This document shows positions 2,944 through 64,000 of a stretch of 64,000 nucleotides of DNA, one piece after another. The notes under the pieces were generated by a model. That model searched no databases. It saw only the letters and a list, made by a program, of their open reading frames with translations, and had not been told where the DNA came from. A program made the translations under genes and the position numbers. This DNA is from Octopus bimaculoides (lineage: Eukaryota). The stretch is taken from positions 56,039,972-56,103,971 of the forward strand of contig NC_068991.1 in NCBI RefSeq assembly GCF_001194135.2, written 5' to 3'. Numbering within the stretch: the stretch's first letter is position 1; each line of letters opens with the position of its first letter.

Positions 2944-3113
2944 GAATGGCTGGTTTCGCACGCCTCTGTGCAGGAGATGTATTCGAAGTTACTATGCGCT
3001 ATGGTACTCAGAAATGGAAAGCAAAAGGCAAAATAGAAAAGGATGGTTCTCAGCGATGGGATCTTCCAGATTTTGTATTCAAGACATTGGTTGGAGACAT
3101 CATTAGCTTAAAG
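2944..3113 (+). CDS. RIPOR: RIPOR exon (GMAGFARLCAGD...IISLK)
   Basis: ttag acceptor at 2943; ends AAG|gcaagt (GC donor); phase 1 to 0. Confidence 0.92.
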
Positions 3114-6100
3114 GCAAGTGTAGTACATGCACATATGTACATGTGCATAAATATACCATATTTGATGGTATATTAGCTCTTTTTTCAAAAACAATTTAAA
3201 AAAAAATTCACCCTGTATCCTATGTGATGAAACTAGGCCTCTTGTAAGCTTTTTTTCCGAATATGCGCTGCTGAAATCGGGGTTGATTTGCCTGTGAGTT
3301 TTGTATGTCATCATATACAGTACTTAAAAGGCAGCACAATTTCACAAATATTCAAATTCAAACATGTTCATATTTACACATGAACACATATATGCTGTCA
3401 TTTGCTCAAACACACACTCACACATAAATAAAATAAATGGTTCTTTGCTAGTTTTATCAATGAATATTGCAGTTGTTTGATCAACTGAAATACTTATTCA
3501 TTGACTTATAATGTTAATAACAGACTATGCCACAGCGTGTTGTACATTTAATGTAAGTCGGAGGCAGAATCAGTATGACAAAGTGTATGACATAGCTGGT
3601 CCTTTGATTTATGGGGGGAGCCCATCTGATGGGGTTCCACTGTTTCTGTCCACCCAGTTTAACTCAAAAGGCTTGGATCTACTTGAGGTTATCATAAAAG
3701 ATGCTTGTTCAAGATGCCATGTATTGATCAACCCTGAGACCTCATGATTGTGAAATAAACTTCTCAAACACTCAGTTGTATCTGTGTGTGTGTTGCATGC
3801 ATGAGTAATTATATAGACATACATACATTGTTTATTTGTAACAATTTTCCAAATCCAGACCATTAAAGTTAATTAATTTTATTATTACAATAATTCTTAA
3901 AGATGTCTCTTCTGTTTTATTTTATTTACACATATACAGGCAGTGGAATTACGGAGTCTTAAATCTGTTTTGTTGGGAGAAAAGAAATGTGAAACCAAAG
4001 ATTTATTCTCAGCTAATCCACAGATGATGACTGTTAGTATCAATCCAAATGGCTCTCTGAAACTCAGCATCATAGTAACATGGAAGTAAGACAATTTTTT
4101 TTTTTTTTTTACTTATTTTCATTATCAAATCTGTTCCTCCATATATAAATTATTCTTGCTGTTAGGATTTTCTGTCATATACAAAGGTCAAGTTTGTTAT
4201 CTGTAAAACAGGGCTTTGTAACTTAGCAGAAGGAATCAGGTTTGTTTATCATCATCATCCCTAAAAGTCATCATCTGAATAATATATAATACAAGTATGC
4301 CTTCTTGGTTATGATATCTATATAGGTTTTTCATTTGGGGAATGTTTCTGTGAGAGAGTGTGTGTGTGTGTGTGTGTAGGAAGGTTAAGAGGGAAACTAA
4401 CTTTTGTATTTGGAAAGTGCACAGGTACAATAAATGCTGAAAATGTGCAGAAAATAGACTCCATCAGTTGCCAGAGCAGGGCAAGCTAGAGGTAGAAGAT
4501 AGCTTAGATGGCTTCTGTTATCTAGGTGACCAAGTTATTGTTGTTCTACCTTATTTGAAATTGATATTAGAGGTATGATTGCATGATAGAATCATTGGCA
4601 CTTCAAATAAAAATGGATTTAATTAATTTTGTGTTTGCATAGATAAGTATAAAAATATTCTTTGATTTATTATATGCCAAATAGATTTTGTTATGATATT
4701 TTCATAAAATTTAGATCTCAAGCTGAATTATATGCCACTGAAGTAATTTTCTTTGAAACATCTTCACTTTTCAGTCCATTGGAAGGTGTGGATGAAAGTC
4801 TAATAATTTATGAAGTTCCACAACGCACTCAAGACACGCCACGACGTCGACCGGTCTCTGCATTAGCAGTGAATGGACAGTACTCTCAATTGGTAGGTCT
4901 CTTACTGCTAAGAATGTGAACTTTTTTATCATCAACTCCTAAAAATACTATTCTGTAGATCTCTGCACCTGTTGCTAAATCTTGAACAGTGCAAAACTGT
5001 ACTTCAGTTAGGCTGTTGTTGTTTTTTTTTTTTGTGGGGTGGGATCAAAAGCTGGAACTAAGCATTCTTCTGTGTAAAATTTTTAATGAAAACTTCTTGT
5101 CAGAACACTTCCTGTTTGCACCATGTTTGTTTATCATTTGCATTTTATCAAGTAAATTTCTCTGGATTTATGCTCCCTTCAAGTTTTGAGCTTAATACCA
5201 GTTAATGTCTCAAGGTGTTATTATCTATTATTCATTTACTGATGATTTGATTAGGAAATTGATCCCCAGGAATCAACATCTTGTAAATATACGTGGAACA
5301 CATAAATTTAACTGTATTCAACCTTGGCAGTTGAAAGAATATAGCAACAGGAAAAAAATCAATGATAAGTAAAAGCTACATTAACATTGCACACCAATGA
5401 TAATTGTATTGTATCAGCAAATTTCATCCAAGTTCATGCAATGGATAAGTTTTTATTATTTTATACTGGATTACTGTATTTTGTCAAAATTTAGTTAGTA
5501 AGAAATTCATATAAAAAAACAATCATTTTCTTCTCATGCACCCATCTTAGATGGAACCTACTAAAGGTTATTCATTGAAGAAAACAAAATCATATGCAAC
5601 ACAAAATGATTAAGAATATTAAAATTCATATAAGGGTATTAAAATTTTGTAAAAATATTTTAATCCCACTAGGAAAAAGAAGTATATATTCTTGAAGTAA
5701 TCAGCATTGCCTTCTAGCATAAAAATGGCTTATACATTGTCCTTGTCAACTTGTAAGAGTTAATCTCAGCTAAAATTAGGTACTCAAAATAAGTACTTCA
5801 CCCTTCTTATTTACAGGTGAATTAAAAAATTCATCCAATTTTAAAAGCATCCATTCTCACGTGAATAAAAAATAAGTTATGTAAAAAAATAAAAGAAACT
5901 ATTCAATTCTTACATATATTGTGCTGATATAACAAAGAAATTTTGTAATTCTTTTTTCTAACATACACTATTACACCTGTTGAATTTGTATCTGATTAAG
6001 GATTTTTTTATGCTTTCATTCCATATACATAATACCTGTTGGTTGGTTATATCTCTTGTAAATTAATCCCTTTTCAAGTTACAAAGGATCCATTGAGACA

Positions 6101-9100
6101 TTAGTGTTAAATAGATTTCAGCATTGATAAGACACTAGTATATTATGGCTTTTCTTTTTGTGCCCCAGTATTTCATTAGCAATATAGACATGAAATATTG
6201 CAAATTCTTTTAAACATAATAATTTGTTGGATCATTTTGGATTTGTTTGTGAGTCATATTAGTTGTGTTATATTATAATAATTTTGTTTTGTTTCTTTCT
6301 TTGTACAGTTTGGTAGTCAGTTAGACCTGCTTGGCCATGAAAGGAGGTACTCCAGTCCCGTGTCATTGCCTCAGTCAAAGGATGATAGTTATATTCTTTC
6401 ATCGTCAAGCTCTTCATTATCTCTTGCTGCAACAGCTTATCCAATGAATGACTCTGATAGCGCTATCTATATATCTCAACTTCCACAGCGCTCAGCTTCT
6501 CGATCAATGTTGACTGGCTCAGCTATGGCTCTTCCACCCCCCTTAACTACAACGGGACATTATCCTTCAGGACTGGCACAGCATGCAGTGTGTGCATATG
6601 CAACAGATGCTTCTAATTTGGAAGATGCACTTAATTGTTTAAGTGTATCACTTGAAGATGTACGTGGCCGATACCAAGAATTACAGAAAATTGAGGAATT
6701 GGTTGATGTTTTACGATGCTTATTAAAGGTAGGCCAACTTCTAAATACAGTATTTTTTTATTATTTTCATTTCTGTGTTGATGCTGTAAAATTTCTAGCA
6801 GAACAGCAAAGAACCAGAGCTTTAGCTCTACCATGTTTATTGGAGTTGCAAACAGTATGAGAAATTTTAAGTGAATGCTATGGACTGCTCAAATAGTTTA
6901 ATAGTTGATAGTCTTGAACAACACTTAAGCAAAATCCACACAGTTGCTACTCTATACTACACTTTACAATCTCTGATGATCTCTCAAAGTGACCCAGTTA
7001 GCATTGCTAAAACTGAATCACAATAACTAAGTTATCTCATTAGAGCCAGAAAATACTTCATCTTTGAATAGTTGCTTGAATAAGACTCACGTTGGAGCAC
7101 TTCGTAACCACTTTATCAAGGCTCATTTGTCCCAGGCTCACCCACCTTTCTCTGCTTGTGACCCTTATTTTGCCTAATTTCCCAGAGTCTGCACTAAACT
7201 TTTCACTCCCTTGCCTACCACATTTTCTCTACAGACATTGCTGTGCATATATACATATATAAACATATTACAAGAATTCTTTTACGAGAGATTTTCAGTA
7301 AACCCTATGCAGCTGTTTCTTTCCACTTATTTACAAGAGTGTAGACATAGGCACCTACTCAACTCTCCCTGTTCCTGATCCAGCAAAATGCTGAATAACC
7401 AGTATATCAATCTCATCTATCTGGGAGGACCAGCAAATATCTGATATTGTTCTTTGCCCTCTATCTTGTTAAAAATAATAATTGCTGTTATCTATGTCCC
7501 AATTAGTGTCTAAATTTGAACTAATGATTATCCAAATTATGTGATTTGTTTGCCCATAAATTTATCAGCTATACTGTATGTTGAATATGACAAAAAAACA
7601 NNNNNNNNNNNNNNNNNNNNNNNNNNNNNNNNNNNNNNNNNNNNNNNNNNNNNNNNNNNNNNNNNNNNNNNNNNNNNNNNNNNNNNNNNNNNNNNNNNNN
7701 NNNNNNNNNNNNNNNNNNNNNNNNNNNNNNNNNNNNNNNNNNNNNNNNNNNNNNNNNNNNNNNNNNNNNNNNNNNNNNNNNNNNNNNNNNNNNNNNNNNN
7801 NNNNNNNNNNNNNNNNNNNNNNNNNNNNNNNNNNNNNNNNNNNNNNNNNNNNNNNNNNNNNNNNNNNNNNNNNNNNNNNNNNNNNNNNNNNNNNNNNNNN
7901 NNNNNNNNNNNNNNNNNNNNNNNNNNNNNNNNNNNNNNNNNNNNNNNNNNNNNNNNNNNNNNNNNNNNNNNNNNNNNNNNNNNNNNNNNNNNNNNNNNNN
8001 NNNNNNNNNNNNNNNNNNNNNNNNNNNNNNNNNNNNNNNNNNNNNNNNNNNNNNNNNNNNNNNNNNNNNNNNNNNNNNNNNNNNNNNNNNNNNNNNNNNN
8101 NNNNNNNNNNNNNNNNNNNNNNNNNNNNNNNNNNNNNNNNNNNNNNNNNNNNNNNNNNNNNNNNNNNNNNNNNNNNNNNNNNNNNNNNNNNNNNNNNNNN
8201 NNNNNNNNNNNNNNNNNNNNNNNNNNNNNNNNNNNNNNNNNNNNNNNNNNNNNNNNNNNNNNNNNNNNNNNNNNNNNNNNNNNNNNNNNNNNNNNNNNNN
8301 NNNNNNNNNNNNNNNNNNNNNNNNNNNNNNNNNNNNNNNNNNNNNNNNNNNNNNNNNTTGAAAAAGAAATCATTATTTATCATGGCTTTTAGTTAATCTT
8401 TCTAAGAACTGCAATTTCATATTTCAAAGATTCAACTTTATATCCTTTATTTCAGTATTCAATTAATAATTCACAGTGAACACTTTGACAGAACATAAAC
8501 TTCATATATATAAACTTCAGAATATAAACTTCAAATATAAAGCAATTTAGAGTTAATACTTCTTTAATTTATTATCAATGATCTGCTACCTTGCAAAATT
8601 CCATAGTCTAAGGCTGTGGTCATAGGTGCACAGTAAAAGACACAACCTCAGCCCCCTGTCTTTCTTGGTGATCTTGGATCCTGATTAATCTGGTATGTTG
8701 AGTTGAGCTATTAGCTTCTCTGTAAGTGAATCTTTTGCTCTTTGACAGATTTTCAACCATGAAATGCAGAGAGTGGTTTAATGAGGCAAGTTGTACTGGG
8801 TTATATGGTAACAGTAGCAGCTAAAACCTGACCTGAATTACAATACCATTAAAATACTGTTTATGTTATCTGAATATGAACTGAGAAACTCTGGGGGATC
8901 TAATTTGAGTTTTCAGAAGGAGATTAGTATCCAATACTTGATTGGTTCTTTATGAAAATCTCAGGAATGAGGAAGTGGCAATCATATAAGGAGACACCTT
9001 CTTGAAACAGTTATACAGCTGTCCATGTTGTATGTTGATACTCCCACCCTTAGTTTCTTACCTCATTGTAAAGCAAATAATGATTTCTAAGTTTGGCACG

Positions 9101-46505: not shown

Positions 46506-46851
46506 ATGGGTACACGATTCAGTCAAGGTCGGCGGAAACCAGTCCCAAATGAAAAACCTCCATATGTCTCTGAGAATGAACAAACTACATATGTCTCTAA
46601 GAAAGAAATCAACTATTTAACAAAGATATTTCAATTTGTCAACAACGACAGAAAGAAGGGTGAATTCTGTGACACAATAGTTGCGTCGAGAAATCAGTAC
46701 TTCATGGTACATAGTATAATGCTCGCATGCAATAGTTATATTTTCCGCAACATAACTGAGAGATATAGCAATCACAACAAGCGTTTAACTATATATGTGG
46801 ATTCCATTAAACCACACATATTTGAACTGTTGCTTGAGTACATATATACAG
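46506..46851 (+). CDS. BTB gene first coding exon (MGTRFSQG...BTB domain)
   Basis: ccttag acceptor at 46500, gaattATGG Kozak context (A at -3, G at +4), G|gtaaga donor, phase 1. Confidence 0.88.
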
Positions 46852-49800
46852 GTAAGACATCTCTGATGTATAGTTATATTCAGATAGTTGTAGGTTTGAT
46901 GGCTGATGCTAGTTTGTTTGCAGTGTTTTTGTATTCTGATTTTAAAAAAATAAATGTACATGTTTATTCTTCTGAGCAGTTAGAGAAAGGCTTAGTAGAA
47001 ATAATTGACATTATTGCTAGGAATATGATACAAATAAATTCAAAGTTGGTCTTAATTAGCACATCAATAATAATGCTATTTCCAGTAACAACATATTTAA
47101 ATGAAGTTGTAAATGATTGGGTCTTATAGGGATCATTTCATATCTTATAATCAGCACTGTTTGATGAGGCATTTAAGATTCATACAGTGACATTATCATT
47201 GTTTATGAAAGGTTGCCAATTTGAGTCATTCGATGAAACCTAAGAAATATGGAAGAAATATGCCTCTCGGTCCAGGATTTGAAATCATGATCTTATGATC
47301 ATAAGTGCAACACAGTCACCTCTAGGTCACAACCCTACATCATTGTCATCATTTATGATGTAAGCTGGTGGTTTAGTGGTTAGTGTGTTGCACTCATAAT
47401 CACAAGATCGTGATTTTGAATCTCAAATAAAATATTGATTAAATATTTAAGTTGATTAAAATTGATTGTGCTTTTCTCCTAAGATTTGTGACCTCGTGCC
47501 AAAATTTGAGATTAATATTTTAGCATACCTTTTTCCCCTCAACTACCACATAAACAAGATTTTATAATTGATTTTCTTAAATTTTGGTTTCAGGTAAACT
47601 GGGTTTGAAAAGAACGAATGTTGCCGAAGTTTCCATGGCCGCAATGGATTTGAAAATCCCAACTATCTGTGAACTTTGCACTAATTTCATTCAAGATATG
47701 GATTTAGAACAAGCTCTAATAATTATTTTAACCAAAAACATACCGCTTTCAAATCAAGTTTTTCGTATGGCTTTCCAGTTCGTTGAGAATAACTTCAGTA
47801 AAGTTTGTGAACATGAACTTTACATGAAAATAGAGATAAATGTTTTGTCAAGACTTTTATCAAGTGACAACTTAAATATACGATGGGAATTGGAGGTGCT
47901 TGACAACTTACTAAAATGGACCTATCATAGCTTCAAGAATCGAAAGATTTATTTTACAACTCTTATTAAACACGTTCGCTTCACCCAAATGACCATGCAG
48001 GAATTGCGTTATGCTTGCACCATGGCTAAACTGTTCCGAGAATCAAGTGTCTGTGAAATTGTTGTTGCAGAATCTGTTCGGTAACGTTCTCTTGGGTTTT
48101 CTTTTAAGACGTGACATCAAATGTTCATTTTGCCACAAACACACATACACACACACATGAGAAACAAATGCATCTGTACGTGTGTGAGGGAAATTATATA
48201 TCATGTGAATTAATTAACTTTACAAAAGAAAATAATTCTTACCTTAATCAAAAACAGTCTTAGGGTACTAATCCTAAAGGAAAGGTTACAGATCCTTCCA
48301 TTTAGAATTGCAAAATATGCACTACTATATTATTTAGTGTGGAGGCACGTGGCTCAGTGGTTAGGGCATCGGCATCATGATCGTAAGATTGTGGTTTCGA
48401 TTCCTGGACCGGGCGGCGCGCTGTGTTCTTGAGCAAAACACTTCATTTCACGTTCCTCCAGTCCACTCAGCTGTCATAAATGAGTAACGCTGTGATGGAC
48501 TGGCGTCCCATCCAGCTGGGAAACACATACACCATTGAAACAGGGAAACTGGGCCCATGAGCCTGGCTAGGCTTTAAAAGGGCGCATTTATTTATTTATT
48601 ATATTATTTAGTACAGATTTTCAACTGTTATAAAATAATGTGTGTGTGTATGAGAGAGAGAGAGAGAGTGCAGGATGCTAACACCAAACTTAAAAAGATT
48701 TATGACCATTTGCTTAACTAGCTATTCAATACAGTTAAGTGACATAAGGTATGATATGACAAAAGTAGAATTGAATGTCCTGTTTAAACTGAACAAAAAA
48801 ACCTTATGCAGCACATTAAGTTTTAAGATTTTTTGAAAAGAATTGGTGAATGTGGAAACCAGTTGACCATGTCATTCCTCTTGATGAATTAGTGGTGCCT
48901 TTTGTATTAATGTTGTTGTTCAACTTATTTTTGTATCAGACAAAGATATCAGTTACTCAGGGGAGACATAAACCACACAAGTGAAAACCCCAGAAATTGT
49001 TTTAAAACAGCTGAAGAAAATTCTACCACAGTAAGGATTCATTAAAAATAATTATTTTCTTTGTTAATTAATGGTTCTAATTTTGTTGCTAGGCTGAAAA
49101 TATTTAGGAGAGAGAGTTTTCATTCATTTCAATTCCAGTATCGGTAAAGACCCATTTCAGTCATGACTGGCCATGAGATTGCACCTAGAAAGTTCCCCTC
49201 CAAGGCACAAGTTCAGGCAAGGTTGTTTGTGGAAGACCAGCAATCGCCCATGCATACTAGTCTCCCCTCTCCATGCCACTGATGTTATCCAAGGGAAAGG
49301 CAAAGGCTTGATACAGCTTGGTAGCAGTGATGTCACAACATATTTCTACAGCTGAGTGAACTGGAGCCACACAAAATAAAGTGTCTTGCTCATGAACACA
49401 ACACACACCCTAGCCAGGAATTGAACTCACTACCTCATGATTATGAGTCTGACACTCTAACCACTGAGCCATGCACCTTCAGTATTGGTACTTATTTTAC
49501 AAAGCTCAGAAGGATGAATAGTAAAGTCTACCTCAGCAGGATTTGAGGCAGTTTGTTCATTTAAAAAGCAACCCAGTGCATTCACCTTGTGAAAGCAGAC
49601 ATTGGAGCTCAACAGAGCTTTCTGGCTCATTGGTTCCTAGTAAGCTATGCAACTTCTGCCAGCATAGAAAACAAAAACAGAAATTAAATGATGATGAAGA
49701 TGTGTACCTCTCTGTAGATTCTGCCAATGCTAACAGAATTATTTCTACTGGAGAATTGAAAAATAGTAGACACAGCTCTAGGATTACTTACCATCTCATC

Positions 49801-52800
49801 ATTCTGTATTCTCAAGAATTTACTTATAATCTTTTTTTTGAATTGACTCAAGGAAGGATTTAAATTCAGATGTAAAGGAATGTAATTAAATACAAGTAAT
49901 TTAATCAGACACTGTGATTGTTTGTGCCACTTACCATCAAAGAAATGTGGCTTTGCTAATCAATGATGGTGTGATTAAAAAAAATTAATTAATTAGCCTA
50001 GATATTGGTGTATGACGGAAAGAAGGAAAATCTAAACATTTCTTTGAAGTCACAACCAAATGCTAGGAAATGAGTGACAACTGTTTTTAATGCTTTCTAT
50101 AGATTTGTAATGAAATTTGAATTCTTTGGATACAAACTGAAGTACTATTGAGAGCCTTTCTCTCGATTTTTAATCCAGTTGCTAATTGTATAGGTAACTT
50201 GTTGAGAAACTTGCTTTGTTTGTAACATTTCAATGTCATTCAGTTTTGTTCTTCAGAACATTAATTCTTTAAAAGTTCTTCCCATCTATGTTTTGCCTTC
50301 AGACATTTCAAACTGAGACATTTCACAGTCTCAGAGAGCGTGTGATTGTCATAGGCACATCCCCTTCTTTTAGCTAAATCATTATTCAAAAATGAGCTAT
50401 TAAGTATTTTAGTTACAGATAAAAAAGTTTATGTAATGTAAATGAGGTGCATAGTTTTGCTTCTGAAAGGAAACCTCATGAGAAGACACACCTTAAGCTG
50501 ACTAACACCTACATAATCACCTCCCCATTTTACTTTTCTACAACATAGAAACAAATTATCTATTTACACTAAAATTGGAATATATTTAACTAATCTAATT
50601 TGTACATCCAGTTTAAAACATTGTTTTGATTCTAGAATTTTTTGATTTTTCAGGGTGCCAATAATTGTCTGACATCCAGTGTTTTGGAAGGCAATATTCA
50701 ATCCAAACAAAATATAACGCAAATATGTGGTGGAGAATCATGTGTGAACAATGCCAAATCAGATCTTGTCCCAAAGTTAAACTCTGAAGAAATTTGTAAT
50801 TATAATCGAAACTGTCATTTTTCACCAAATGTTTTTAATGATATTCAGTCTTTTATGGGAAATTCTATGAATGCCAGATCTTGTGAGAATATTTCTTCAG
50901 TTCAGCTTAACAAGAGAGATGAGAAGTTGCAAACGCAAAGTAAAACAGAAAGCAGTTTAAACAAATCATCATTCAATCAATTTAAAGAGATTTTGGATGG
51001 ATCTAATCAGTTAGTCAAATCTACAACAGAATTTAAGTCTGACCTAACAAAACAGAAAGCAGTAACTCATGACAACACTGCTCAAATAAATGGAGTGCCA
51101 GTTTTGATTGAAAAATCAGCATCTGTTTTACTTAGCAAAAGAAGCAATGCAATAGATTTATCAAGTGGTATCTACAATCTGTTTGATTATACTACAGAGA
51201 TAAATCCACTTTGTGGAAAATTGTTTTCATTAGATAATTCTAGTAAAATTAAAACAATCTGTGGGCAAACAAAGAACTTGAGAATTAAACGACAATCTAA
51301 AATGCGTTTGTTCATTAAATCTAACAGATTAAAAGTAAACAATAAAATATCTAAAATCCTTCATAAGAGAACTCCAGGTGTTTCTTGTATGTTTGTTAGG
51401 CGAAAGAAACCAACAATTATCAAAGATTCTTATCTAACACTAAAACCTAAAACAGTTTTAGGAGATGTTGAAAATGGTTCCATAAACAACAAGAAACATT
51501 TTCCCTCAGCTTCACATATTTTCAGTAAAAACAAAATGTTTACTTGTTATAATAATGATACAACTACTGTAAGAAGGTATGGTAGGGTAAAATATATTGA
51601 AGGTGGATTTTCTAACTGTGTAATTTCAAACAGTGAAGCTAGTTCAGGAACAGAGTTAGAAAATGATGAGAATTCTAATAATGAACATAGTACTCCCCTT
51701 GACGAAACTGGGGTCAAATTAGATCATATTCCTCAGCCAGAAGAGCAAGCACATGACAGAGTAACATTTCAGAATGATATTGAAGACGAAAATATTGAAG
51801 TCACACCGGTTATCCATGGAGCAGTAATCCGCTTAACAAAAACAGATTTAAGTTCAGATGATGAAAAGAAAACTCTTCCAGATTTCCATAAAAGAATTAC
51901 TTATGGAACTAATATATCGATAAGGACTGCAGAACCTTTGTATTCAGGAACAAATGTTACTTCTGCCTATATTTGGGAAAACAGCTCTATATCAAGGCCA
52001 GTCATTATGATGAAAAATACTGACTTTAATTATAACTTACCCAATGTTTGTTCAGTTCTTTCAACAACAGACAATATAAGTACCACTCTACCTGATCTCA
52101 CGACATTCCTTACTCAGAGACGCAATTCTGTTGATGTATGCACTGACTTATTAAGATTTGCGCGTAAGAGAGCAATGCCAAAAAAATGTTTTTCTGATGA
52201 AGTATTAAGTGTTTGGGAGACAGAACTGAAAAGGGGTATTTCTGAAGCTGCTGAAAAATATAAACATAATGTTCTATTTAATAAGAAAAATCAAAAAGTT
52301 AGAATGGTGTCTCGGATTGTTGAGGTAGATAGCCACTCCTCCGAAGCACCAGTTACAAAGAATGACAAAAATAATTCACAGAATACCAAAAGTGAGGAAC
52401 TAAAACCTAATTCTTCAAAGAAATCAAATTTGGTTCTTCATTTTAGCACAGAATGTTGTTTAGACAATGTGTCAGATGTTGATTACAATAGAGAAAATAA
52501 AATAGGAACTAATGATAAAGATAACCAGACAAATGGAGACAATTATGATTCTGCAAAGGAAGAAACAGCATCACTAGATATTCTAAGCATCCAAGCTGTT
52601 CCTGCATGCTCTTGCGCATCTATGCCATCGTTGGTAAGACCCCATTATCATTATTGCCCTAAATTTCTTATTATCGCAATCATCTAAGACAAAATGCACT
52701 GAGCAACCATCATTGCTTTTAGGGAATAAATGAGAAATTTTTAACCCTGATAACACTCCCTAGAATATGCATCTAGTATGAAGACACAGATCTCACTGTG

Positions 52801-55800
52801 TGGTTGAGAAATGTGCTTTATGTTCATGGGTTCAATCCCACTGTGTGGAACCTTGGGCAAGTGTCTTCTACTATAGCCCCGGGCTGACCAAAGCCTTGTG
52901 AGTAGATTTGGTAGATGCAAATTAAAAGAAACCCATTGTATATGTGTGTGTGTGCGCCCTTGTCTAGACATCACATGATGGTTGTAAATGAGCATCATTG
53001 TCATACAAGCAAGGTTGCTCATTACCAGTCTTCCATGAAAAACATGTCTGGCCATGAGAAAATATTACTTTGCTCAGAAATAGAGAAAAAGGTGAGAATA
53101 GGTGACAGAAAGGGCATCCAGCCATAGAAAACCTTCCTCAACATATTCCATCTGACCCATTCACGCATGGAAATGTGAGCATTAAATGATGATGAAGCTT
53201 TCTTGCTCAACCTTCTATATATTTCTAACCCTCCTATACATGTATTATTTCTTGCCAACCATACAATATACTGCCGACTCTATTAAACCTTGCTGTCTAT
53301 ATTCTACACTACAGTCACTACATGTGCTGTCATTGATTTCTTGCTATTCTTTTCCCACCAACTCTGCTGGTCTCAAGTATCACCTCAGCCACTTTGATAT
53401 TAACCCTTTTCTGATAATTTCTAATCTCATATACTCCCACCACTACCACCTACATAGATAACACAATAACACAACCCAGTCTTTCTGTACAGGTTTTCAA
53501 TATGATTTAGTTTCACATATGTAGACCAGATGTCCTTGTGCTTCTCTTTCTTTTATCAAAAGATTTTTCACTGTGTACTTCGATGATCATCTCGCTGTCT
53601 GAAGAGCTTAATGACATCAAAATGACTGAAACATGTTTCTCAGAGATAACTTGTTTTGTGAACAAGACCAAATCCCAACAGCTGCTACCTTGCTTTATCT
53701 GTCTGTCTACTTCTCTTTCTCTCTCTCTCTCTCTGTATGTCATCTCTGTCTGTCCATTTGTCTGCTTCTATTTGTGTTGTTTGTCCATTCTGATCTGGGG
53801 CTAATTAACCAATCCAGCATCTATGTACACAGATACCTATATAAATTAACACCTATGTACAATAATATACTTTTTAACTATCTTTTGCCTTCTCATCTAC
53901 CAGTATAAAGTCACCTCTCCTAGGTTTATAGTCTTACAAATTGCATGATAGCCACACAAGTGCTTGGTGGCTTGAAAAAAGTATACACACTGTAAAGTGG
54001 TTGGTGTTGCAAAGAGCATCCTGTTATAGAAACCATATCAAAGCAGATACTAGATCTTGATGCAGTCCTTGGGTCCATTGAATCATGTCAAACCCATGTC
54101 AGCATGAAACATAGATGCTAAATGATGATGATGATTCATACTTATGTACACAAGCATATTTTGGATCTCTATGCAGTTGATAGATCTGTAAGAAAAACCA
54201 TTAACTTTTCCTCAAACCACACTCTATTATCTTAAAGAATAAGGACACATTTCTGTAATCTTGGCACAGAGATGTTATGTCTTAAAGAATAAGACATAAT
54301 GATAACTTGAATTTCTACAGCCTCTGAACCACATTACCTTCTCCATATTTGACCCTTCTTTTTTGCTACTACAACTCAGCTTGCGAAGACTTATTGGGGC
54401 AAGCGAAAGCGAAATCGGGATAGCACCTGTGCCCAGCGTCGCCTTTCTAGCACTTGTGCCCGTGACATGTGTAAGGATTTTTGAGCGAGATCATTGCCAG
54501 TGCCCCTGGACTGGCTCTTGTGCGGGTGGCACATAAAATACACCATTTTGAGCGTGGCCGTTGCCAGTACCGCCTGACTGGCCTTCGTGTGGGTGACACG
54601 TAAAAGCACCCACTACACTCTCTGAGTGGTTGGTGTTAGGAAGGGCATCCAGCTGTAGAAACTCTGCCAAATCAGATTGGAGCCTGGTGTTGCCATCCGG
54701 TTTCACCAGTCCTAAGTCAAATCGTCCAACCCATGCTAGCATGGAGAGCGGACGTTAAACGAACGATGATGAATGGCCTATGTTCCTATCAACTAGGTTG
54801 TTACAAAACAACTACATTCAGAAGCACCCAACGTTTCTCTTTTTCTTGTCCCCTTTATTGTATTATAATGCTTGGATCATAATGCTCATATAATAATGGA
54901 TCATTATTGTATCATAATGCTTGGATCCTTTACTAACCACTGTGCTCAATAAACATTTCTTCTCTTGAAAATCAACTCTCTGGAATCCTGTTCTTGTCCA
55001 TGTTTTGCATGCCTATGTCAACTTACAGATGTTCAGGCTGAACATAAACTGGAACTACATCTTCAACCTGACTGTGCCATAAAACATGCATGCACACTAG
55101 GTGGTATCAAAAGGTTCCCGAGTTAGTTATGCTTAATAAAAAATAACTAATTTACCTTAGTTTTAACATAATCTCCTTTGAAATAATCACCTTGTGCAGT
55201 AATCCACCCATCCCTGCATTCCTGTCACTTTTGGAATCCAGTCTGGAACTCATTTTCTGTAAGTGAGTTGAGGACCTTCTGTGATTCGCTCTGGATCTTG
55301 ACAATAGTGTTAAAATGGTGACCTTTGAGCTGCATTTTTGTCTTGGGGAAGAGATGGAAGTCTGTAGGTGCTAAATCTGGTGAATAGGCCGGGTGTGGAA
55401 GTAATACCATGTTGTTTTTGGTGAAAAACTCACAAGTGAGGAGAGCTTAGTGAACAATCCGATTCTTTGCACTCCATAGATCCAGTTGCTTTCACTGAAT
55501 GTCCTCCCTCAAATGCTTCAAAACACCACAGCAGAACTCTTGATTGATAGTCTAGCCCTATGGGTCAAATTCTCGATGCACAATACCACAATTCCAAGGA
55601 TGACACTCATGGCAGGTCTTCCAGATTGCTCATCATCAATGCCACTCAAAGCATTGTGTATGATTCATTGTCTCTTCACTGTAAGCTTGCCAAAACATGC
55701 TCAATGTCTCTGTAGCAGACTTCCAAAGTTTAATGTAAGATTTAACGTTGGCTCATTGTTCCTGTCCATGACAGAATCGCAGGCCACAGCATACACATCA

Positions 55801-58062
55801 TCACAAAAACACAAATTTCACAACTTGTGAAGTAAACACAGTGATGTCACTTGGCACACTGCCTCATGAAGGCTCCTGCTAGCTCCCACTGTGCATGGGA
55901 CCATGTGCTACATTCTGCTGGCACACTACAGGTGTTATCAAAAAGTCTAGGAACTTTTTGATATCACCTCATATACATGTATATGCCTACCATGTAGTTA
56001 CACATTCTGGAATACATAAGCACACACTCACTTATGGATATACTTATTACACACCATCATCATTATCATCGTTTAACATCCGCTTTCCATGCTAGCATGG
56101 GTTGGACGATTTGACTGAGGAAAGGTGAAACCAGATGGCTACACCAAGCTCCAATCTGATTTGGCAGAGTTTCTACAGCTAGATGCCCTTCCTAACGCCA
56201 ACCACTCAGGGAGTGTAGTGGGTGCTTTTATGTGTCACCCACATGAAGGCCAGTCAGGCGGTACTGGCAACGGCCACGCTCATATATATACAAAGTACAT
56301 ACAGACAAATACTTGTACTTACACACAAGTACTTGTGCACACAGATACACACATATGCAAACATGTGTGTACATATGAGTATGTGTGTTCATGACACCTT
56401 GGGCAAGTGTCTTCTACTGTATGCCTGGGCTAACCAAAGCCTTGCGAGTGGATTTGGTTGACAGAAATTGAAAGAATTGTGTGTGTGTTTCCTTGTTTCT
56501 GTATCCTCCATCAGCACTTGACAATCAGTGTTGGTGTTCCAGTAACACAGTGGTTTGGCAAAAGAGACTGATTAAAAAGAATATCAGGCTTAAAAAAAGT
56601 AATGGGATTGATTCCTTCAACTAAAATTCTTTAAAGTTGTGTCCTAGCATGGCTGCAGTTTAATGAGTGAAACAAGTTAAAATATATACATATCTATATA
56701 TATGTGTGTGTACCGTAAAAAATTTAGATTCAGGTGAATATGGTACTTAAGTTTAGGCACCAGAATTAAGTATGGTATTATCCATACAGTTTCAAAATAA
56801 GGTGATTAAGGTCAAAATAAGCAACAAGGATATCCAAAGTTAATGCAGTACAATCGTTTCATGCGACTCCATTTAATTAAGCAATGTGAACATTACATCA
56901 AATATAAAATGCAGAGCAATCCTCAGCTGCACAAAGATATAGAAATTTAATGAAATTACATTTAAACAGAAGGACATATTTTTATAACTACATCTAAACT
57001 CTCCAAGTAGAAAGGAAGAATACAAAAAAACATTTTGACTTAGCCAGACCATACAGGCTAGTATGAATATACTTATTACACACCATATACATATATACAA
57101 AGTACATGGAGAGTTTAGATGTAGTTATAAAAATGTCCTTCTGTATAAATGTAATTTCATTAAATTTCTATATCTTTGTGCAGCTGAGGATTGCTCTGCA
57201 TTTTATATTTGATGTAATGTTCACATTGCTTAATTAAATGGAGTCGCATGAAACGATCATACTGCATTAACTTTGGATATCCTTGTTGCTTATTTTGACT
57301 ATATGTGTGTGTATGTATGTATTTCATTTTAGGATTGGAATGACTACCCAGAGGAAGCACTTTATGGCTACATACATGAGGAACCTATTTCAACATCTGC
57401 ATTTAACAGAGAGCCTAGAAAACCTCAAGAGATCTTTACAAAAGATGAAAGGGTAGGTTTATAATTTGATATATTGTTTCTGTAAAGGCTGTTATTAAGT
57501 TATTAGAATATATATTATTTATGTGATTGTTATAACTATTGCTACTGCTATTGTTCTTTTTGTTTAGAGACTGGTCAGTTGTGATTAAAAAGACCAGTGA
57601 CCAAATACGTTCCAACTGCCTTTTTATTTTGTTTTTCAGAGAAAATGTTATCTGGGGTCACATTACCATGGAGTAGGGAGGGGTTCTTTTATGATAGTAG
57701 AGTGTGTTTAGAGGGATGACGATGATGATATGCTCTCCATTTTAGGATACTCTTAAATGTGTAGTGATAGCTAGTGACATCAAAACATGTAATGAATGCA
57801 AAGATATTGAACCTACTTCAGAATCTTCTCCACCTAGAAAAACTACTGAGACCCAGAATATCAATATAGATCTGGCTGAACAAGAAAAAGTAAGTTTATA
57901 TTCTGATATAATTTATGTCCTTAATTTGTTTATTATGTTATTGAGACTTTTATTCTTTTATTTGTTTCATTCTGCTTTGGTTATATTGACTTCAATACTT
58001 ATTTTACCAATTTCTGTATGTCAAATTACTGTTATAAGACATATGCATACATGTACACATAT

Positions 58063-58112
<50 letters not shown>

Positions 58113-60274
58113 TGTCAGTGTAAATATATTTGCATTTCATGTATAATTCATATAAATGCATTTCTTTTAAGGATACTGTTTACTATGTAGCAGTTGGTAG
58201 CAACATGGAAAAATGTAGCATATGTAAAAATATTAAAGCTGCTTCATCATCTGCTTCATCCAAAGAGATCAGTGAACCCCAGGAAGCGTGACAACCTGGA
58301 GAGATCACCATAGACCTTGCTGAAAATAATTACTTTTGGTTTTGTTTAGAAGAGAGATATTAACTTAGCTAAGTCTAGTCAGCATAATACCTGATTTCTT
58401 CATAAATTCTAAACCTAACCCTGAGTGCTTGATACTATTCTAAATTTACATACTGAATGAGCAGGTACTATTAGACAAATAGAGGATGCAAAGGAAAATT
58501 AGACATAATATACCAGAAAAATCACACATCTTTGGAATCAAATGTGTAAATATAAATTTAGTGACTAATATCCCCACAGAGGATTACAATTCCAGAGCCT
58601 AAATCAGTGAGGGACCTGGGTATCGACATGAGTGATGATACCTCTTTCCAAGTGCACATTACCAGGATGGCCACAAAGTGCAGACGACTGGCTGGCTGGA
58701 TCCTGAGAACGTTCAGGACCAGAAAGAAAAAAACCATGATGGTCTTCTGGAGGACATTAGTTCTCAGCCACCTGGATTACTGCTCCCAGCTATAGTCACC
58801 TAACAGTGTAAAATTAACAGCAGCCTTGAAGCAATCCAGCGAAGCTTCACAAAGAAGATTGTCTTGTTACAACAGCTCAGCTACTGGGAAAGGCTGAAAC
58901 AGCTAAGACTACTTCCTGGAGCAAAGGCGGGAGAGGTATGCAGTAATATACATCTGGAAGATCCTGGAAAGAATTGTGCCAAATTTTGGCATTGAAAGCT
59001 ACACCAATGCCAGAATGGCTCGACACTGCACAGTGCCAAAAAGAGCCCAGCAATGCCATCGTGCTTTAGGACCAGTTACTACAACAGCCTGGGTTTCAGG
59101 GGCCCACAGCTTTTTAATATTCTTCCAAAGAGCCTGAGGGACCTACACAAAGTGAATGTGTTTTCAAATCAAAACTGGACCTCTTCCTGTTGAGAGTCCC
59201 AGATGAACCTACCTTGCAGCAAAAGGTGCAAATGAGAGTAGTGACATCAAACTCTCTTATTCACCAATAATAACACCAATAATAACAGCGTAGCAAAACG
59301 CATATGTATACTAAACTAGAGATTGGCAGACAGACCCTGTACACACACAGTTGACACCGTTCAGCTATGGCTGTCATCGATCCATGGGAGGCTACTCTAC
59401 TTTCTCTTGGAATGTGTTATAACTTTACACTACATTTAATTTTGTAACCCACACTAACCCAACCACCAGGACTATCTTTTACTTGTTTCAGTCATTTGAC
59501 TGTGGCCATGCTGGGGCACCATCTTGCAGGGTTTTAGTTGAATAAATCAACTCCAGAGCGTACATATAGTGTTATTGTATAGAGTGGAAGTTCAACACGA
59601 AGTTTTGAACTCATTATCTTGTGGTTAATAATCCATTACCTTAAATTTGAAGCAATTAAGTCTTTAAACACTATTTTACTGGGTTTAGTCTTTCGACTGT
59701 CACCATGATGGGGTATCACCTTAAAAAATTTAATTGATCATACTGACCTCGGTACATATTTCAATCTGGCATTTATTTTATAGATCTCTGCTTCATGAAC
59801 TGCTAACTTTGAGACACAGTGGGACACAATACACAATTTAACAACAAATGTAAACACACACACATATGCACATATTAGGTGCAAGAATGACTGTTTGGTT
59901 GAGAAGTTTGCTTCCTAACCACATAGTTCCACGTTCCCTCTGCATAACCCTAGGCCAACCACAGACTTGTGACTGAATTTGGTAGATGGAAACTGCAGCA
60001 TTGTTCATCAGTAAAATGATCAAAAAACATCTTTATAAAGAAGAGTTGTTTGCTTTATACTCCTCGTGTGCTGATTCTGCCTATAAGAAAGGAACAAATA
60101 ATACAATGTAGCTGTAGGTCATAACACATGGGCAAGGCTGGGGTGCATTNNNNNNNNNNNNNNNNNNNNNNNNNNNNNNNNNNNNNNNNNNNNNNNNNNN
60201 NNNNNNNNNNNNNNNNNNNNNNNNNNNNNNNNNNNNNNNNNNNNNNNNNNNNNNNNNNNNNNNNNNNNNNNNNN

Positions 60275-60319
<45 letters not shown>

Positions 60320-61071
60320 ATATTTATATATATTTATATATGTATGCACACCTCCAGCATAAACTCATTTGTATCTCAAGTGTAATTTATATAAATGCAT
60401 TTCTTTTTAGGATTCTGCTAACTATGTAGTGGTTGGTAGTAACATGGAAGAATATAACGTAAGTAAAAATAGTAAAGATGCTTCAACATCTGCTTCGCCC
60501 AAACTGATCAATCAAGCCCAAAAGACCAGGCAACCTGAAGAGATCAACATAGACCTTGCTAAACAAGAACAGGTAAGTTTATATTACATATTTTATCAAA
60601 CTCTGGCCACAATAACACAGTTATCAAGTTAAATATTTATATATATATCAAATCCATTTTCATATATTATTTTGGTACCAACTTTGGTGACTACTGTGCT
60701 ATTCATGTGTGGAATTTGCAGTGTAAATTCTTGTTTTGGAGGTATATAGAGCCCTGTTTCACTGTTAGTAGGACCAAGAAAGAAATATTCCAACAAGCAA
60801 GAGAAGTATCATTTAATAAAGTAAACATGATTTACATGTGTTCTACTGTAAGTTTCATGCTTGGGTACTAGAATAATCAGATGGGTTAGCATGACATGTA
60901 CCAGTAATTCTTTTGTATTTTTATTTTCTTTTTTTGTGAGCCTGAACATTCGCGGAATAGTGATAGTACATTGCATACTATACAAACTCGTCTAATTACT
61001 GTACTGAGCATGAAACTTATAGTAGCTCACATGCAAGTCCTGTGTCTATTGAATTTAATGATATATATATA

Positions 61072-61130
<59 letters not shown>

Positions 61131-63537
61131 GCAATGATATCCAGCCTTGTACATGGTGGCAACGAGGCAACATATCTATAAATATATAGGTCTATACTGA
61201 GGAGACCCATATACACACATTCATTCAAATATATATCCGTTCATCCATATAAGAGTTAGTTATAAGGGATTATTAATTTGGGCTAGAAACTTTGTTGACT
61301 CTCTGTTAATACAAAAACACCAGGCTAACAAAAGGTTTTCAGATTTGTATAGAACTCCAAATCCTAAGACAAGATCTGATGTTGGAATTCATCACCAAAT
61401 GACTTTGTAAATCCATGGTTGCATTCCCCAGTTAATATCATATTTTTCACAGAGTGATATACAAAAAAAGGCATAAATGATTGGCTTTACATATTTCTTT
61501 GTTTGTGCAACTTAGACTTACAACTGTTTCTGATATGCATTATAGGTGTGTTCATAGTTCTGTTTACTCAGTTGGTCAATTGCATATCAGAAACAGCTGT
61601 AAGTCTAAGATACACAAATAAAGAACTATGTAAAGCCTATTATTTATGCCTTTTCTCATGTATATGTGTGTGTGTATATACATATATGTATGTGTTTGTG
61701 TGTATATATATATACATACACACAGTGGGGAGGTCCAGTATTAAGGCAACCAAAGTTTTGGGCTTTGATAACTTTGTGGAGTTCTGTATTTTTATGTGGA
61801 TATCCAGGAATGGTAGTTCATTGCAACTGGATTCTGTCGTGAATTAGATAGATGGGTGAAGTGTGTTCGGTATATTGTTAAATATATTCAGATCTTCATT
61901 TGATTTGTCCCAGAAGATGAAGCAATCATCAAGGAAGCATTTCCACTTTTTAATGATATATTTCTTATATTCCTGATCAAAAGCTTTTTCTACTTCCTCA
62001 TAAAGTTTTTCTTCTAAGTATTCCATAACTAAGTTTGCATATGAAGGCACAAACCGCGTCCCTATAGCTGTGCCCTTTAACTGTCGATATGTTTTATTGC
62101 CAAATCTAAAGCTATTTTCCTCTAGTACTAGGCATGTGGCCTTAGTGATGAAGTCAGTCTTGAAGCATTCATTTATCCATTCTCTATGTTTCTCTACCCA
62201 GTGACTGATTGCTTCTAGGCCTAAATTGTGAGGTATATTAGTATAGAGATTGGTGATATCAAAACTTGTAAGTATAGTACCTTCAGCAACAGTGGAAGGG
62301 ATGTGTTGGATGAAATCTATGCCATGGATAGAAATCTATGCCATCCTGTACATAACTGTGTATTAAAGGGCACAAAGGTTTTAGGAGTATATCTAAAACT
62401 TGACTTAGTTGTGTTGGCGCTTGAGGTCCAGCAACTATTGGTCATAGTTTAAGGTCAGCAGGCCTTAGTATTTTTACGCAATGGTTCTTCTGTTTATTTA
62501 TGGCACTTTGTATTTCGGAGCTTTTGTGGATTTTGGGTAACCCATAAAAATTGCTCTCTTTGATTACAGAGTTGCATATATAGTATTTCTCCTTGTCTAT
62601 GAATCAATCTTGGAATTCATTGATTAGTCTTCTGATTTTATTCATTATCGTTTTTTCTGAGTGTCTTGGTTCTTCCTTGTAGTAGGTTTGGTTTGTTAAC
62701 ATTTCCAATATTTTATCTTTATCATAGTCTTTGTCCATGATTACTATCACCCCTCTCTTATCGGCTTCTTTTAGGATGATTGGGTTGTTATTTTTCAGTG
62801 TTTGTAAGGCTTCCTTTTCTTCTTCATGAAAGTTTTGTTTGCATCTGTGGGTATTTAGGGGAAATTTTGAAATCATGTCCTCAATTAGGCATAGTGCAAA
62901 TTATGCATAAATTTACTAGCGCAAATTATACATAACGCTACGGCTTTATAAGTTTGTTCAGAGTTGCCTCTCTAGGTACATCTCATTGACAAAAGCCAAG
63001 AAGCTTGAAACATCGATGTCTAGGATTCCTAATAGATGGCGACACTGAATGAACTGGGTGTTTTCACACATTTTTACCATAAGAAAGATATGTTCTCCAT
63101 AGTAACTGCAGTGTATTTGCTTTTAGCAGTTGAAATATGTCACAGACATATTTCAACTAACCTAAATTCTGCACGCATGTACATGTGTGTGTGTGTGTGT
63201 GTGTGTATGTGCGAGTTTATATCCCTATAACTTAGTGGTTGTTTGACTAAAATTCTTCAAGGTGGTACCTCAGCATCACCATAGTCTAATGACGGAAACT
63301 TGTAAAAGATAAGAGATATCTCCAACATAAATTTATTTGCATCTCAAATATAATTTATATAAATAAATTTCTTTTTAGGATACTGTAAAATATGTAGTGG
63401 TTGGTGGTAACATGAAAAGATGTAAGATATGTAAAAATGTTAAAGCTACTTCAACACCTCCACCCAAAGAGATCAATGAACCCCAAGAGACCGGACAACC
63501 TGAAGAAATCGACATAAACCTTGCTAAACAAAAACAG
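46506..63537 (+). CDS. BTB-BACK domain protein (KLHL/KBTBD-like N-terminus, no Kelch repeats in window) with long low-complexity exon and tandem repeat exons; probably 3'-partial
   Basis: Exons 46506-46851, 47594-48080, 48940-49030, 50654-52633, 57333-57452, 57746-57889, 60411-60572 and 63379-63537 join in one frame of about 1160 aa. BTB motifs: FCDTIV..FMVHSIMLACNSYIF, FELLLEYIYTGKL. BACK motifs: FVENNFSKV, LSRLLSSDNLNIRWELEVLDNLLKW, LIKHVRFTQM. Confidence 0.8.
47594..48080 (+). CDS. BTB gene exon: end of BTB plus BACK domain
   Basis: tttcag acceptor, CG|gtaacg donor, phase 1 to 2; BACK motifs. Confidence 0.9.
48339..48600 (+). mobile_element. tRNA-derived SINE, same family as 44831
   Basis: Highly similar to 44831-45075; (ATTT)n tail. 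Confidence 0.85.
48940..49030 (+). CDS. BTB gene linker exon (RQRYQLLRGD...ENSTT)
   Basis: gtatcag acceptor, ACA|gtaagg donor. This exon is needed to convert phase 2 to 0; splicing 48080 directly to 50654 hits a stop after 6 codons. Confidence 0.8.
49145..49480 (-). mobile_element. tRNA-derived SINE
   Basis: Reverse complement begins tgaaggtgcatggctcagtggttagagtgtcagactcataatcatgaggtagtgagttcaattcctgg. Confidence 0.7.
50654..52633 (+). CDS. BTB gene large exon, 660 aa, Asn/Ser/Lys-rich, no recognisable domain
   Basis: ttttcag acceptor, in frame with the 681-aa ORF 50642-52687; TTG|gtaaga donor in phase 0. Confidence 0.85.
52795..53190 (+). mobile_element. SINE (gttcaatcccactg...ccttgggcaagtgtcttctactatagcc family)
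   Basis: Same head and core at 37748-37915 (+), 20720-20855 (-), 21375-21525 (-) and about 56395 (+). Confidence 0.75.
54374..54772 (+). mobile_element. Longer copy of the ggcatccagctgtagaaac SINE-like family
   Basis: 3' part near-identical to 13433-13560; its start matches 63975-64000. Confidence 0.8.
55096..55973 (-). mobile_element. Internally deleted mariner element with both TIRs
   Basis: Minus ORF 55225-55410 PHPAYSPDLAPTDFHLF (mariner C-terminal motif); HTH-region remnant at about 55600-55790; left TIR aggtggtatcaaaaggttcc and right ggaactttttgatatcacct. Confidence 0.85.
56055..56281 (-). mobile_element. Reverse-oriented copy of the same SINE-like family
   Basis: Reverse complement of the 54560-54770 region. 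Confidence 0.8.
56811..57299. repeat. Inverted repeat, about 195-bp arms and 100-bp spacer
   Basis: 56811-57005 versus 57107-57299 are reverse complements with a few mismatches and one 2-nt indel. Confidence 0.92.
57333..57452 (+). CDS. Repeat exon 1, diverged (DWNDYPEEALYGYIHEEPISTSAFNREPRKPQEIFTKDER)
   Basis: ttttag|GAT, AGG|gtaggt, 120 nt, phase 0-0; shares tcaacatctgc and cct-aagagatc with the later repeat exons. Confidence 0.7.
57746..57889 (+). CDS. Repeat exon 2 (DTLKCVVIASDIKTCNECKDIEPTSESSPPRKTTETQNINIDLAEQEK)
   Basis: ttttag|GAT, AAA|gtaagt, 144 nt, phase 0-0. Confidence 0.75.
58172..58326 (+). pseudogene. Repeat exon 3, disrupted (in-frame TGA, no donor); pseudo-exon or alternative terminal exon
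   Basis: taag|GAT ACT GTT TAC...; colinear with repeat exons 4 and 5 but has TGA at 58289-58291 and lacks the terminal CAG|gt. Confidence 0.65.
58585..59270 (+). mobile_element. CR1/L2-like LINE 3' fragment
   Basis: RDLGIDMSDDTSFQVHI...WILRTF...LVLSHLDYCSQL*SP, then YWERLKQL...RRERY..IYIWKIL; stops and frameshifts. Confidence 0.8.
60411..60572 (+). CDS. Repeat exon 4 (DSANYVVVGSNMEEYNVSKNSKDASTSASPKLINQAQKTRQPEEINIDLAKQEQ)
   Basis: tttttag|GAT, CAG|gtaagt, 162 nt, phase 0-0. Confidence 0.78.
61835..62880 (-). mobile_element. Penelope-like element reverse transcriptase fragment
   Basis: Minus strand IILKEADKRGVIVIMDK, GTAIGTRFVPSYANLVM, FLDDCFIFW...LHPSI are PLE RT motifs. Confidence 0.8.
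63379..63537 (+). CDS. Repeat exon 5 (DTVKYVVVGGNMKRCKICKNVKATSTPPPKEINEPQETGQPEEIDINLAKQKQ)
   Basis: tttttag|GAT, CAG|gtaggt, 159 nt, phase 0-0. Confidence 0.78.
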
Positions 63538-63881
63538 GTAGGTGTTCATATTATGATATATTTTATCAAACTGTGTTCACAATACTGTAGTTATCAAGTT
63601 TTTATACTTTGAATATATGTATTTGTTATGTATATAAATCTGTGTCGTTAGAAAATTCAGCATAAATTCCTACGCACGCACGCACGCACGCACACGATAG
63701 ATCGCTAGCCACTACACGTTATTTGTTTTCTCTCTTTATTTCTTTCTGTGTCCCTTTCTGTGGAAGAGTGTAGGCTTGAAACGTTAAAGACTTTTTCAAT
63801 TCCCAAGCGTTAAAATAATACATCTGTTTGTTGTCTACACTATCTGTCTTCGTCTTTTGTTTTGTTTTTTGTGAATTCTCC

Positions 63882-63924
<43 letters not shown>

Positions 63925-64000
63925 ACCAAATTTGATGACTGGCACCCATGCCAACCTCCCCTCATTGGACACTAAACTCGGCTTGCAAAGACCTGTTGGG

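Follow-up and report, generated by a model that had tools for sequence, protein, structure and literature searches.

Tandem homologous exons in an octopus BTB-BACK gene and their probable use as skippable repeat cassettes

This report concerns a tandem array of homologous, symmetric exons in Octopus bimaculoides and the gene of which they form a part. The stretch analysed, here called the window, comprises 64,000 nucleotides (NCBI RefSeq assembly GCF_001194135.2, contig NC_068991.1, positions 56,039,972 to 56,103,971 of the forward strand), and its positions are counted from its first letter. Eight exons on the plus strand, one of them a short linker designated exon 2b, constitute one open frame of 1163 amino acids (aa) with canonical splice sites, which begins with a BTB and a BACK domain, passes through a long low-complexity exon and arrives at a series of small exons, the units u1 to u5, of which four are intact. 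We consider it likely that these units supply one repeat per exon to a single large BTB-BACK protein, the orthologue of the product of LOC118765495 of Octopus sinensis, and that they act as cassettes which can be skipped within a tail that is an array of motifs. The exons and units are given below, a slash within a splice site marking the boundary.

46506-46851, plus strand: exon 1, with the start codon and the N-terminal part of BTB; donor in phase 1
47594-48080, plus strand: exon 2, with the remainder of BTB and BACK; donor CG/GTAACG in phase 2
48940-49030, plus strand: exon 2b, a 91-nt linker exon, RQRYQLLRGDINHTSENPRNCFKTAEENSTT, leading from phase 2 to phase 0
50654-52633, plus strand: exon 3, 1980 nt, 660 aa, low-complexity; donor GTAAGA in phase 0
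57333-57452, plus strand: u1, 120 nt, 40 aa (DWNDYPEE...TKDER), phase 0-0, donor GTAGGT
57746-57889, plus strand: u2, 144 nt, 48 aa, phase 0-0, with CNEC, donor GTAAGT
58172-58330, plus strand: u3, a dead unit (pseudo-exon), with CSIC and a TGA at 58289-58291
60411-60572, plus strand: u4, 162 nt, 54 aa, phase 0-0, CxxC lost (YNVS), donor GTAAGT
63379-63537, plus strand: u5, 159 nt, 53 aa, phase 0-0, with CKIC, donor GTAGGT

All five units begin ag/GAT and lie where the first-pass annotation of this DNA, made from the letters alone, had put them; u1, u2, u4 and u5 are open and equipped with polypyrimidine acceptors. At the position homologous to the donors of the other units, u3 is without a phase-0 GT. 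Homology among u2-u5, which that annotation had also proposed, is borne out by tblastn within the window, where most pairs give E-values of 6e-8 to 3.5e-17 and the weakest direction, in the u2-u3 pair, only 0.042; a hidden Markov model (HMM) of the units agrees with this picture, and the CxxC pairs attributed to u2, u3 and u5 are present. The kinship claimed for u1 stands only in part: STSA and PQEI occur in it literally, but no significant similarity links it to the other units (shuffle p 0.10-0.33; HMM E ~9). The introns around the units measure 282-2806 nt. Since u5 ends at a donor, without a stop codon, the gene continues past the window. A separate observation concerns u4, in which an internal consensus donor AAC/GTAAGT (60458/60459, spanning 60458-60464, phase 0) lies where CxxC was lost; if used, it would give a 48-nt mini-exon, and it is absent from the O. 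sinensis orthologue.

We searched 1.84 billion representative proteins exhaustively with HMMER, exon 2b, exon 3 and u1, u2, u4 and u5 together serving as the query, and obtained only two proteins, XP_036363633.1 of O. sinensis and a 1915-aa protein of Argonauta. The former, 'uncharacterized protein LOC118765495 isoform X4 [Octopus sinensis]', aligns at its positions 278-1161 with residues 1-886 of the query, and the locus has 14 RefSeq isoforms (XP_036363630.1 to XP_036363644.1, 1394-1656 aa), annotated only as 'uncharacterized protein'; a literature search on the locus name LOC118765495 found no mention of it. When the concatenated tail was submitted to a word-indexed protein search, no match came back, and a query of exon 3 and the tail retrieved nothing but an unspliced Logan genomic contig, the index being swamped by low-complexity words such that both true orthologues were missed.

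With the unit exons mapped in the genome, LOC118765495 is colinear with the window over all eight exons, and boundaries and phases are equal. Amino acid identity amounts to 97% in BTB-BACK, 90% in exon 2b and 87% in exon 3, and to 80%, 85%, 74% and 83% in u1, u2, u4 and u5, respectively. The units correspond one to one with those of O. sinensis (s1, s2, s4 and s5), since s4, the orthologue of u4, likewise lacks CxxC, while s5 is three codons shorter than u5 owing to an in-frame 9-nt difference. Between s2 and s4 there is no orthologue of u3, and u3 is absent from every RefSeq isoform. Beyond the equivalent of the window the O. sinensis array extends over approximately eight more units and ends with a 101-aa Cys-rich terminal exon. 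The earlier surmise that the array runs past position 64000 is thus corroborated by the orthologue, and the earlier description of the units as the C-terminus of the protein has to be given up.

The same searches bear on the possibility, singled out for checking at first pass, that the unit is a fragment of a dispersed transposon family. The spacers are indeed rich in SINE-, LINE- and foldback-type repeats, but neither tblastn nor the unit HMM detects a further copy of the unit on either strand of the 64-kb window, only the two orthologues match among the representative proteins, and the copies are strictly tandem, lie on the same strand and are bounded by splice sites. Such an origin is, in our judgement, scarcely credible.

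In O. sinensis the longest isoform, X1, has twelve tail units, namely s1 and eleven units of the repeat family, followed by the Cys-rich end. The 14 isoforms differ by whole units, the others lacking one to five units relative to X1, and s1 and s2, the orthologues of u1 and u2, are included in 14 of 14. The annotated differences include the following.

X6: without exactly s4 (the orthologue of u4)
X5: without exactly s5 (the orthologue of u5)
X4: without s11
X7: without s9
X8: without s8-s9
X11: without s8-s11
X14: without s5-s9
X13: early end, after s10

Judged from these RefSeq models, the splicing of the array is cassette skipping and not a mutually exclusive choice. The first-pass annotation had envisaged a variable tail arising in either manner; the use of phase 0-0 for skipping is what X6 and X5 display, and mutually exclusive splicing finds no place in a gene of which one isoform, X1, has every unit. 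A mutually exclusive cluster, in which each transcript would take up a single unit from among u2-u5 and those downstream, could appeal to the adjacency of homologous exons of equal phase and to the co-duplicated intron elements described below, which would be possible selector sequences. The serial arrangement of all units in X1, however, contradicts it; the units differ in length (144, 162 and 159 nt), their symmetric phase permits joint inclusion without a frameshift, the introns are of a size that imposes no steric block, and the best docking/selector duplex between the conserved upstream element and the upstream introns is no better than those obtained with shuffled sequences. We therefore hold mutually exclusive choice to be very improbable here.

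The block that was duplicated exceeds the exon, as approximately 55 nt of upstream intron are common to u3, u4 and u5 and approximately 60 nt of downstream intron to u4 and u5.

60355-60410, plus strand: co-duplicated upstream intron element (repeat family D2), with copies at 58116-58171 and 63323-63378
60573-60630, plus strand: co-duplicated downstream intron element (repeat family D11, 82% identical), with a copy at 63538-63600

Between u4 and u5 the upstream element is 85% identical over 60 nt and the downstream element matches at 47 of 62 positions, the flanks of these two units being 76-85% identical overall; a microsatellite precedes each of u3, u4 and u5. The dead unit u3 is at least 21% diverged from each of the others, far above the orthologous divergence. 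So strongly diverged a unit without a counterpart in O. sinensis must be an old copy, which died here and was deleted there.

In the upstream part of the gene, exon 1 encodes a BTB domain (Pfam PF00651, E 2.8e-16 in the window model and 7.7e-20 in the O. sinensis orthologue) and shares 96.8% nucleotide identity with positions 3001-3346 of the O. sinensis locus (hereafter L003), and exon 2 encodes a BACK domain (PF07707, E 6.5e-17). Exon 3 has no domain recognised by Pfam; its amino acid identity is 32% to Argonauta and 75% to the Logan genomic contig, which derives from another octopod. Without exon 2b the junction of exon 2 with exon 3 is out of frame both in the window and in Argonauta. The linker exon restores the frame and is part of all O. 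sinensis models, and these models join all parts of the gene, so that the assignment of the units to the BTB-BACK gene, already made at first pass, is supported on the evidence of sequence and annotation. An alternative acceptor of exon 3 at 50679/50680 was weighed and was dropped after exon 2b had been found.

The solved structures nearest to the BTB-BACK part are those of KEAP1 (6wcq), KLHL3 (4hxi), KLHL11, KBTBD2 and gigaxonin, and the phmmer alignments, which extend over the whole of BTB-BACK, have E-values of 1.8e-17 for KEAP1 and 1.4e-16 for KLHL3. Pfam finds only BTB and BACK, and no Kelch propeller, both in the model built from the window and in O. sinensis X1 at full length. Proteins of this family contact Cul3 (Cullin-3) through a phi-x-E motif in BTB and a 3-box at the start of BACK. 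By analogy with the family, function as a Cul3 adaptor can be assigned provisionally.

In Argonauta hians (locus BAAFZT010000086.1, of which L001 and L004 are parts used here) a single exon of the unit family was found, at L001 16451-16588 and in phase 0-0. Its Smith-Waterman scores against u4 and u5 are 43-48 as compared with a shuffle mean of 19, a score reached by none of 2000 shuffles, and the unit HMM ranks it first in the locus, although this match taken alone is weak (E 0.026). The remainder of the Argonauta tail consists of unrelated short tandem repeats, and no counterpart of the O. sinensis Cys-rich terminal exon was detected there. With one unit in Argonauta, the array is lineage-specific, as had been presumed at first pass. 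Within this tail, at L001 18025-20088, we also observed a 42-nt tandem repeat of approximately 45 copies, in which two of the forward frames and one of the reverse frames are open (VCCYSNDVSKPQQQ / LSLNNKYVAIATTL); the second forward frame is the one taken by the annotated protein, and QNQQSSFG / QNQQPCCC repeats follow in P0004.

The comparison suggests the following course of events. An ancestral phase 0-0 exon of approximately 150 nt, which is single in Argonauta, would have been amplified in the Octopus lineage by unequal tandem duplication, together with some 55 nt of upstream and some 60 nt of downstream intron. The window would then contain the first units of the resulting array, u2, u4 and u5 with the decayed u3, placed after the unrelated symmetric exon u1, and roughly eight further units and the Cys-rich terminal exon would be expected beyond base 64000. 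Unit copies would arise, drift and die. Because every unit is symmetric, the spliceosome can drop any one of them without a frameshift, and the live copies, presumably in the window species as in O. sinensis, would behave as independent cassettes that change the number of repeats rather than as alternatives from which one is chosen. On the reading that we find most likely, the disordered tail would occupy the position of the Kelch propeller and bind the partners of a Cullin-3-type adaptor; its short linear motifs would form a multivalent array, the valency of which would be set by exon duplication, loss and skipping.

Several observations weigh against this interpretation. Skipping is known from computational RefSeq models of a sister species, and four of these models (X2, X9, X10 and X12) carry chimeric s7 units, in which the 5' half of the exon at L003 33156-33317 is joined to the 3' halves of other units; in X2, X9 and X12 the 3' half comes from a 5'-truncated unit at L003 39200-39319. 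A chimera of this kind implies a non-canonical junction or a misassembled region, and it has the appearance of an artefact that arose when near-identical repeats were mapped or assembled. Furthermore, none of the 14 isoforms includes the intact unit at L003 31200-31343, whose splice sites are good. With respect to the adaptor, the HMMER alignments show no clear conservation of the Glu in the phi-x-E motif that contacts Cul3: M-S-E of KLHL3 lies opposite Y-S-N/H and L-R-E of KEAP1 opposite S-N-H, an I-T-E being found four residues earlier. The annotation of Argonauta hians places two genes (L001 10001-12112 and L004) where we propose one. Finally, the nucleotide identity of the units to O. sinensis, at 87-94%, equals that of the introns, at 84-94%, and young paralogues show dN/dS ratios of 1 or more, the values among u3, u4 and u5 being 0.9-1.7.

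The last point requires a consideration of selection. Against O. sinensis, dN/dS is 0.24 in BTB-BACK (dS 0.056), 0.71 in exon 3 and 0.81 in the pooled units (dS 0.107, dN 0.086); u2 compared with the other units gives 0.5-0.7. A ratio of about 0.8, combined with exons no more conserved than introns, means that the tail could be nearly functionless, and on the timescale separating the window species from O. sinensis its sequence appears to evolve close to neutrally. One could accordingly suppose that the units are neutral passengers, spliced in without any sequence-specific function as a drifting tail subject to birth and death, or that they are largely annotation noise; the dead u3, the truncated and the unannotated intact units of O. 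sinensis and the wholly different short repeats that make up the tail in Argonauta would all be in keeping with this. On the other hand, open frames, phase and both splice sites have been kept in the four intact window units and in at least 12 O. sinensis units, although paralogues diverge by 35-65% in amino acid sequence, and the indel that separates u5 from s5 is in frame. Conservation is, moreover, focused in motif columns, namely D1, Y5, G9, C15, C18, S-T-S...P and EI-x-IDLAKQEQ (among 11 O. sinensis units, C15 and C18 are 90% conserved and Q 100%), and codon position 2 is the least variable (0.19 versus 0.35 and 0.31). A wholly neutral tail seems unlikely to us on this balance, though it is the rival to which we would give most weight.

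The Argonauta annotation can be read as showing that exon 3 and the units belong to a gene separate from BTB-BACK. It comprises a 280-aa 'kelch-like protein 20', which ends at a stop after BACK, and the hypothetical protein of 1915 aa, the first exon of whose gene is the counterpart of exon 2b; and an in-frame TAA directly follows exon 2 in the window, where intron retention would lead into it, and is conserved in Argonauta, which has the same CG/GTAA arrangement at the exon 2 donor. Exon 2b is, however, conserved in Argonauta from the shared acceptor onwards, including codons that lie 5' of the annotated ATG, and the conserved stretch keeps to the frame that joining to exon 2 in phase 2 would set; in the window the exon lacks an ATG, and 14 of 14 O. 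sinensis models join both parts. The Argonauta annotation has thus probably split one gene in two, as judged by a conserved linker exon that is coding 5' of the annotated start, and we think it quite improbable that there are two genes. A short isoform with BTB and BACK only, generated by intron retention and ending at the conserved TAA, may exist alongside the long form.

The nature of the tail itself was approached through profile searches and structure prediction. The unit repeat has no match in Pfam and none in the PDB (15-sequence profile, E >1), in accordance with the first-pass statement that it resembles no known domain. AlphaFold2 assigned a mean pLDDT of 32.6 to the four window units, and for one unit with a 15-row alignment it reached 54 without secondary structure; the tail is predicted to be intrinsically disordered. 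It had been suggested at first pass that CxxC pairs bind metal, and a structured repeat may be imagined in which the pairs of neighbouring units, or of the chains of a BTB dimer, bind zinc and fold the tail. Both Cys columns are strongly conserved in O. sinensis, and CxxC is found in u2, u3 and u5. There are, however, only two Cys per unit of approximately 50 aa, too few to bind zinc by themselves and short of the four ligands per repeat of the zinc-finger or zinc-ribbon type, and u4, s4, s1 and s13 have none; u4 and s4 had lost both before the species split and are still intact and included, exon skipping would leave sites unpaired, and no zinc-finger family matches the unit in Pfam or the PDB. 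The low pLDDT values and the lack of secondary structure point in the same direction, as weak evidence, because AlphaFold2 models no metal. Zinc binding by paired CxxC is therefore unsupported, and a metal-folded tail is in our view rather unlikely.

Other features of the introns and spacers lie between and ahead of the units.

60150-60274, no strand: assembly gap (N) in the u3-u4 spacer, 136 nt upstream of u4
56712-57299, no strand: foldback insertion, with 174-nt arms at 56811-56984 and 57126-57299 that are 97% complementary (inverted repeat I2)
58560-59290, plus strand: retroelement-like fragment in the u3-u4 spacer, with open reading frame (ORF) fragments such as FWRTLVLSHLDYCSQL

The assembly gap touches no exon, and each unit is phased on its own, so continuity of frame across it is irrelevant. 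On its left all three frames are interrupted by stops, and 59650-60149 aligns to L003 21650-22155 (84%); on its right lies a (TA)n(TG)n microsatellite, and 60332-60699 aligns to L003 22936-23300 (89%), with order and strand unchanged. The 780-nt interval of O. sinensis that matches the gap contains no units; it consists of non-coding repeats with stops in all frames.

The foldback insertion, of approximately 590 nt and possibly an element of foldback or MITE type, ends some 33 nt 5' of the u1 acceptor, is flanked by a repeated TATATGTGTGTGT, is absent in O. sinensis and might affect the splicing of u1. The retroelement-like fragment, which we take to be of LINE type, falls for the most part within 58596-60149, a spacer segment 84% identical to O. 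sinensis. On the minus strand at 61844-62876, in the u4-u5 intron, further ORF fragments (KWKCFLDDCFIFW, LKEADKRGVIVIMDKDYDKD) were noted, which presumably represent a remnant of a retroelement of reverse-transcriptase type; when the O. sinensis introns were compared, nothing of 150 nt or longer matched it, and Pfam found no confident transposon domain in the spacer ORFs. SINE-like repeats occur in the introns between exon 3 and u1 and between u3 and u4 (54549-54762 / 56069-56282, and at 52850, 56396 and 59921); they include an inverted pair of 94% complementarity, and related copies are found throughout the O. sinensis locus. Far upstream, a 166-aa ORF on the plus strand at 6360-6860 (LEDVRGRYQELQKIEELVDVLRCLLK) may be an exon of an unrelated gene.

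Comparison with known systems helps to place the gene. Like the KLHL/KBTBD adaptors of Cullin-3, the window protein has BTB followed by BACK at its N-terminus, but in place of Kelch it has approximately 700 aa of low complexity and an array of repeats of approximately 50 aa. From its own orthologue at LOC118765495 it differs in possessing u3 and the foldback insertion 5' of u1 and in the three additional codons of u5. Arrays of cassettes with one repeat per exon are known from titin PEVK exons, nebulin repeats and tropoelastin, in which skipping changes the number of repeats and keeps the frame. The octopus units are likewise tandem symmetric exons, each with one disordered or simple repeat; protein family and repeat sequence are different, and the octopus array is known from sequence and annotation. 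In Drosophila the BTB genes lola and mod(mdg4) employ alternate zinc-finger terminal exons and have no BACK; the octopus gene is also a BTB gene with a variable C-terminal part, but it does have BACK. Mutually exclusive exons derived from tandem exon duplication are treated in two reviews (PMC9013439, PMC6071210). The octopus units are similarly neighbouring homologues duplicated together with their intron flanks, but they are included serially, and no competing RNA structures beyond those of shuffled sequences were found for them.

Tandem exon duplication is common, occurring in approximately 10% of animal genes according to a study cited in PMC9013439; its mechanism is standard, the exons and their skipping were already on record in the RefSeq annotation of the sister species, and the weak constraint on the tail leaves the payoff uncertain. 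What the present locus offers is a clean and datable case in cephalopods, with one unit in Argonauta and at least 14 unit loci in O. sinensis, in which live, dead and truncated copies coexist side by side. For the window an eight-exon model is supplied, and for Argonauta a correction of the annotation, one gene having probably been split. Regarding the family, the locus would provide a BTB-BACK protein in which a disordered repeat array, in place of Kelch, is the substrate-binding module. A further and distinctly speculative extension, to which we attach little probability, is that an octopus Cullin-3-type BTB-BACK adaptor has become a receptor of tunable valency, whose lineage-specific units of approximately 50 aa, each with a hydrophobic YVVV-type patch, a CxxC and an acidic EIDIDL-type patch, would replace the Kelch propeller and engage a multivalent partner in a number set per tissue by skipping and, over evolution, by the birth and death of exons. 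The patches bear what we assume to be a resemblance to SUMO-interaction-like motifs, and binding of the partner would then proceed, for example, through such motifs or through zinc bridges between units or between chains.

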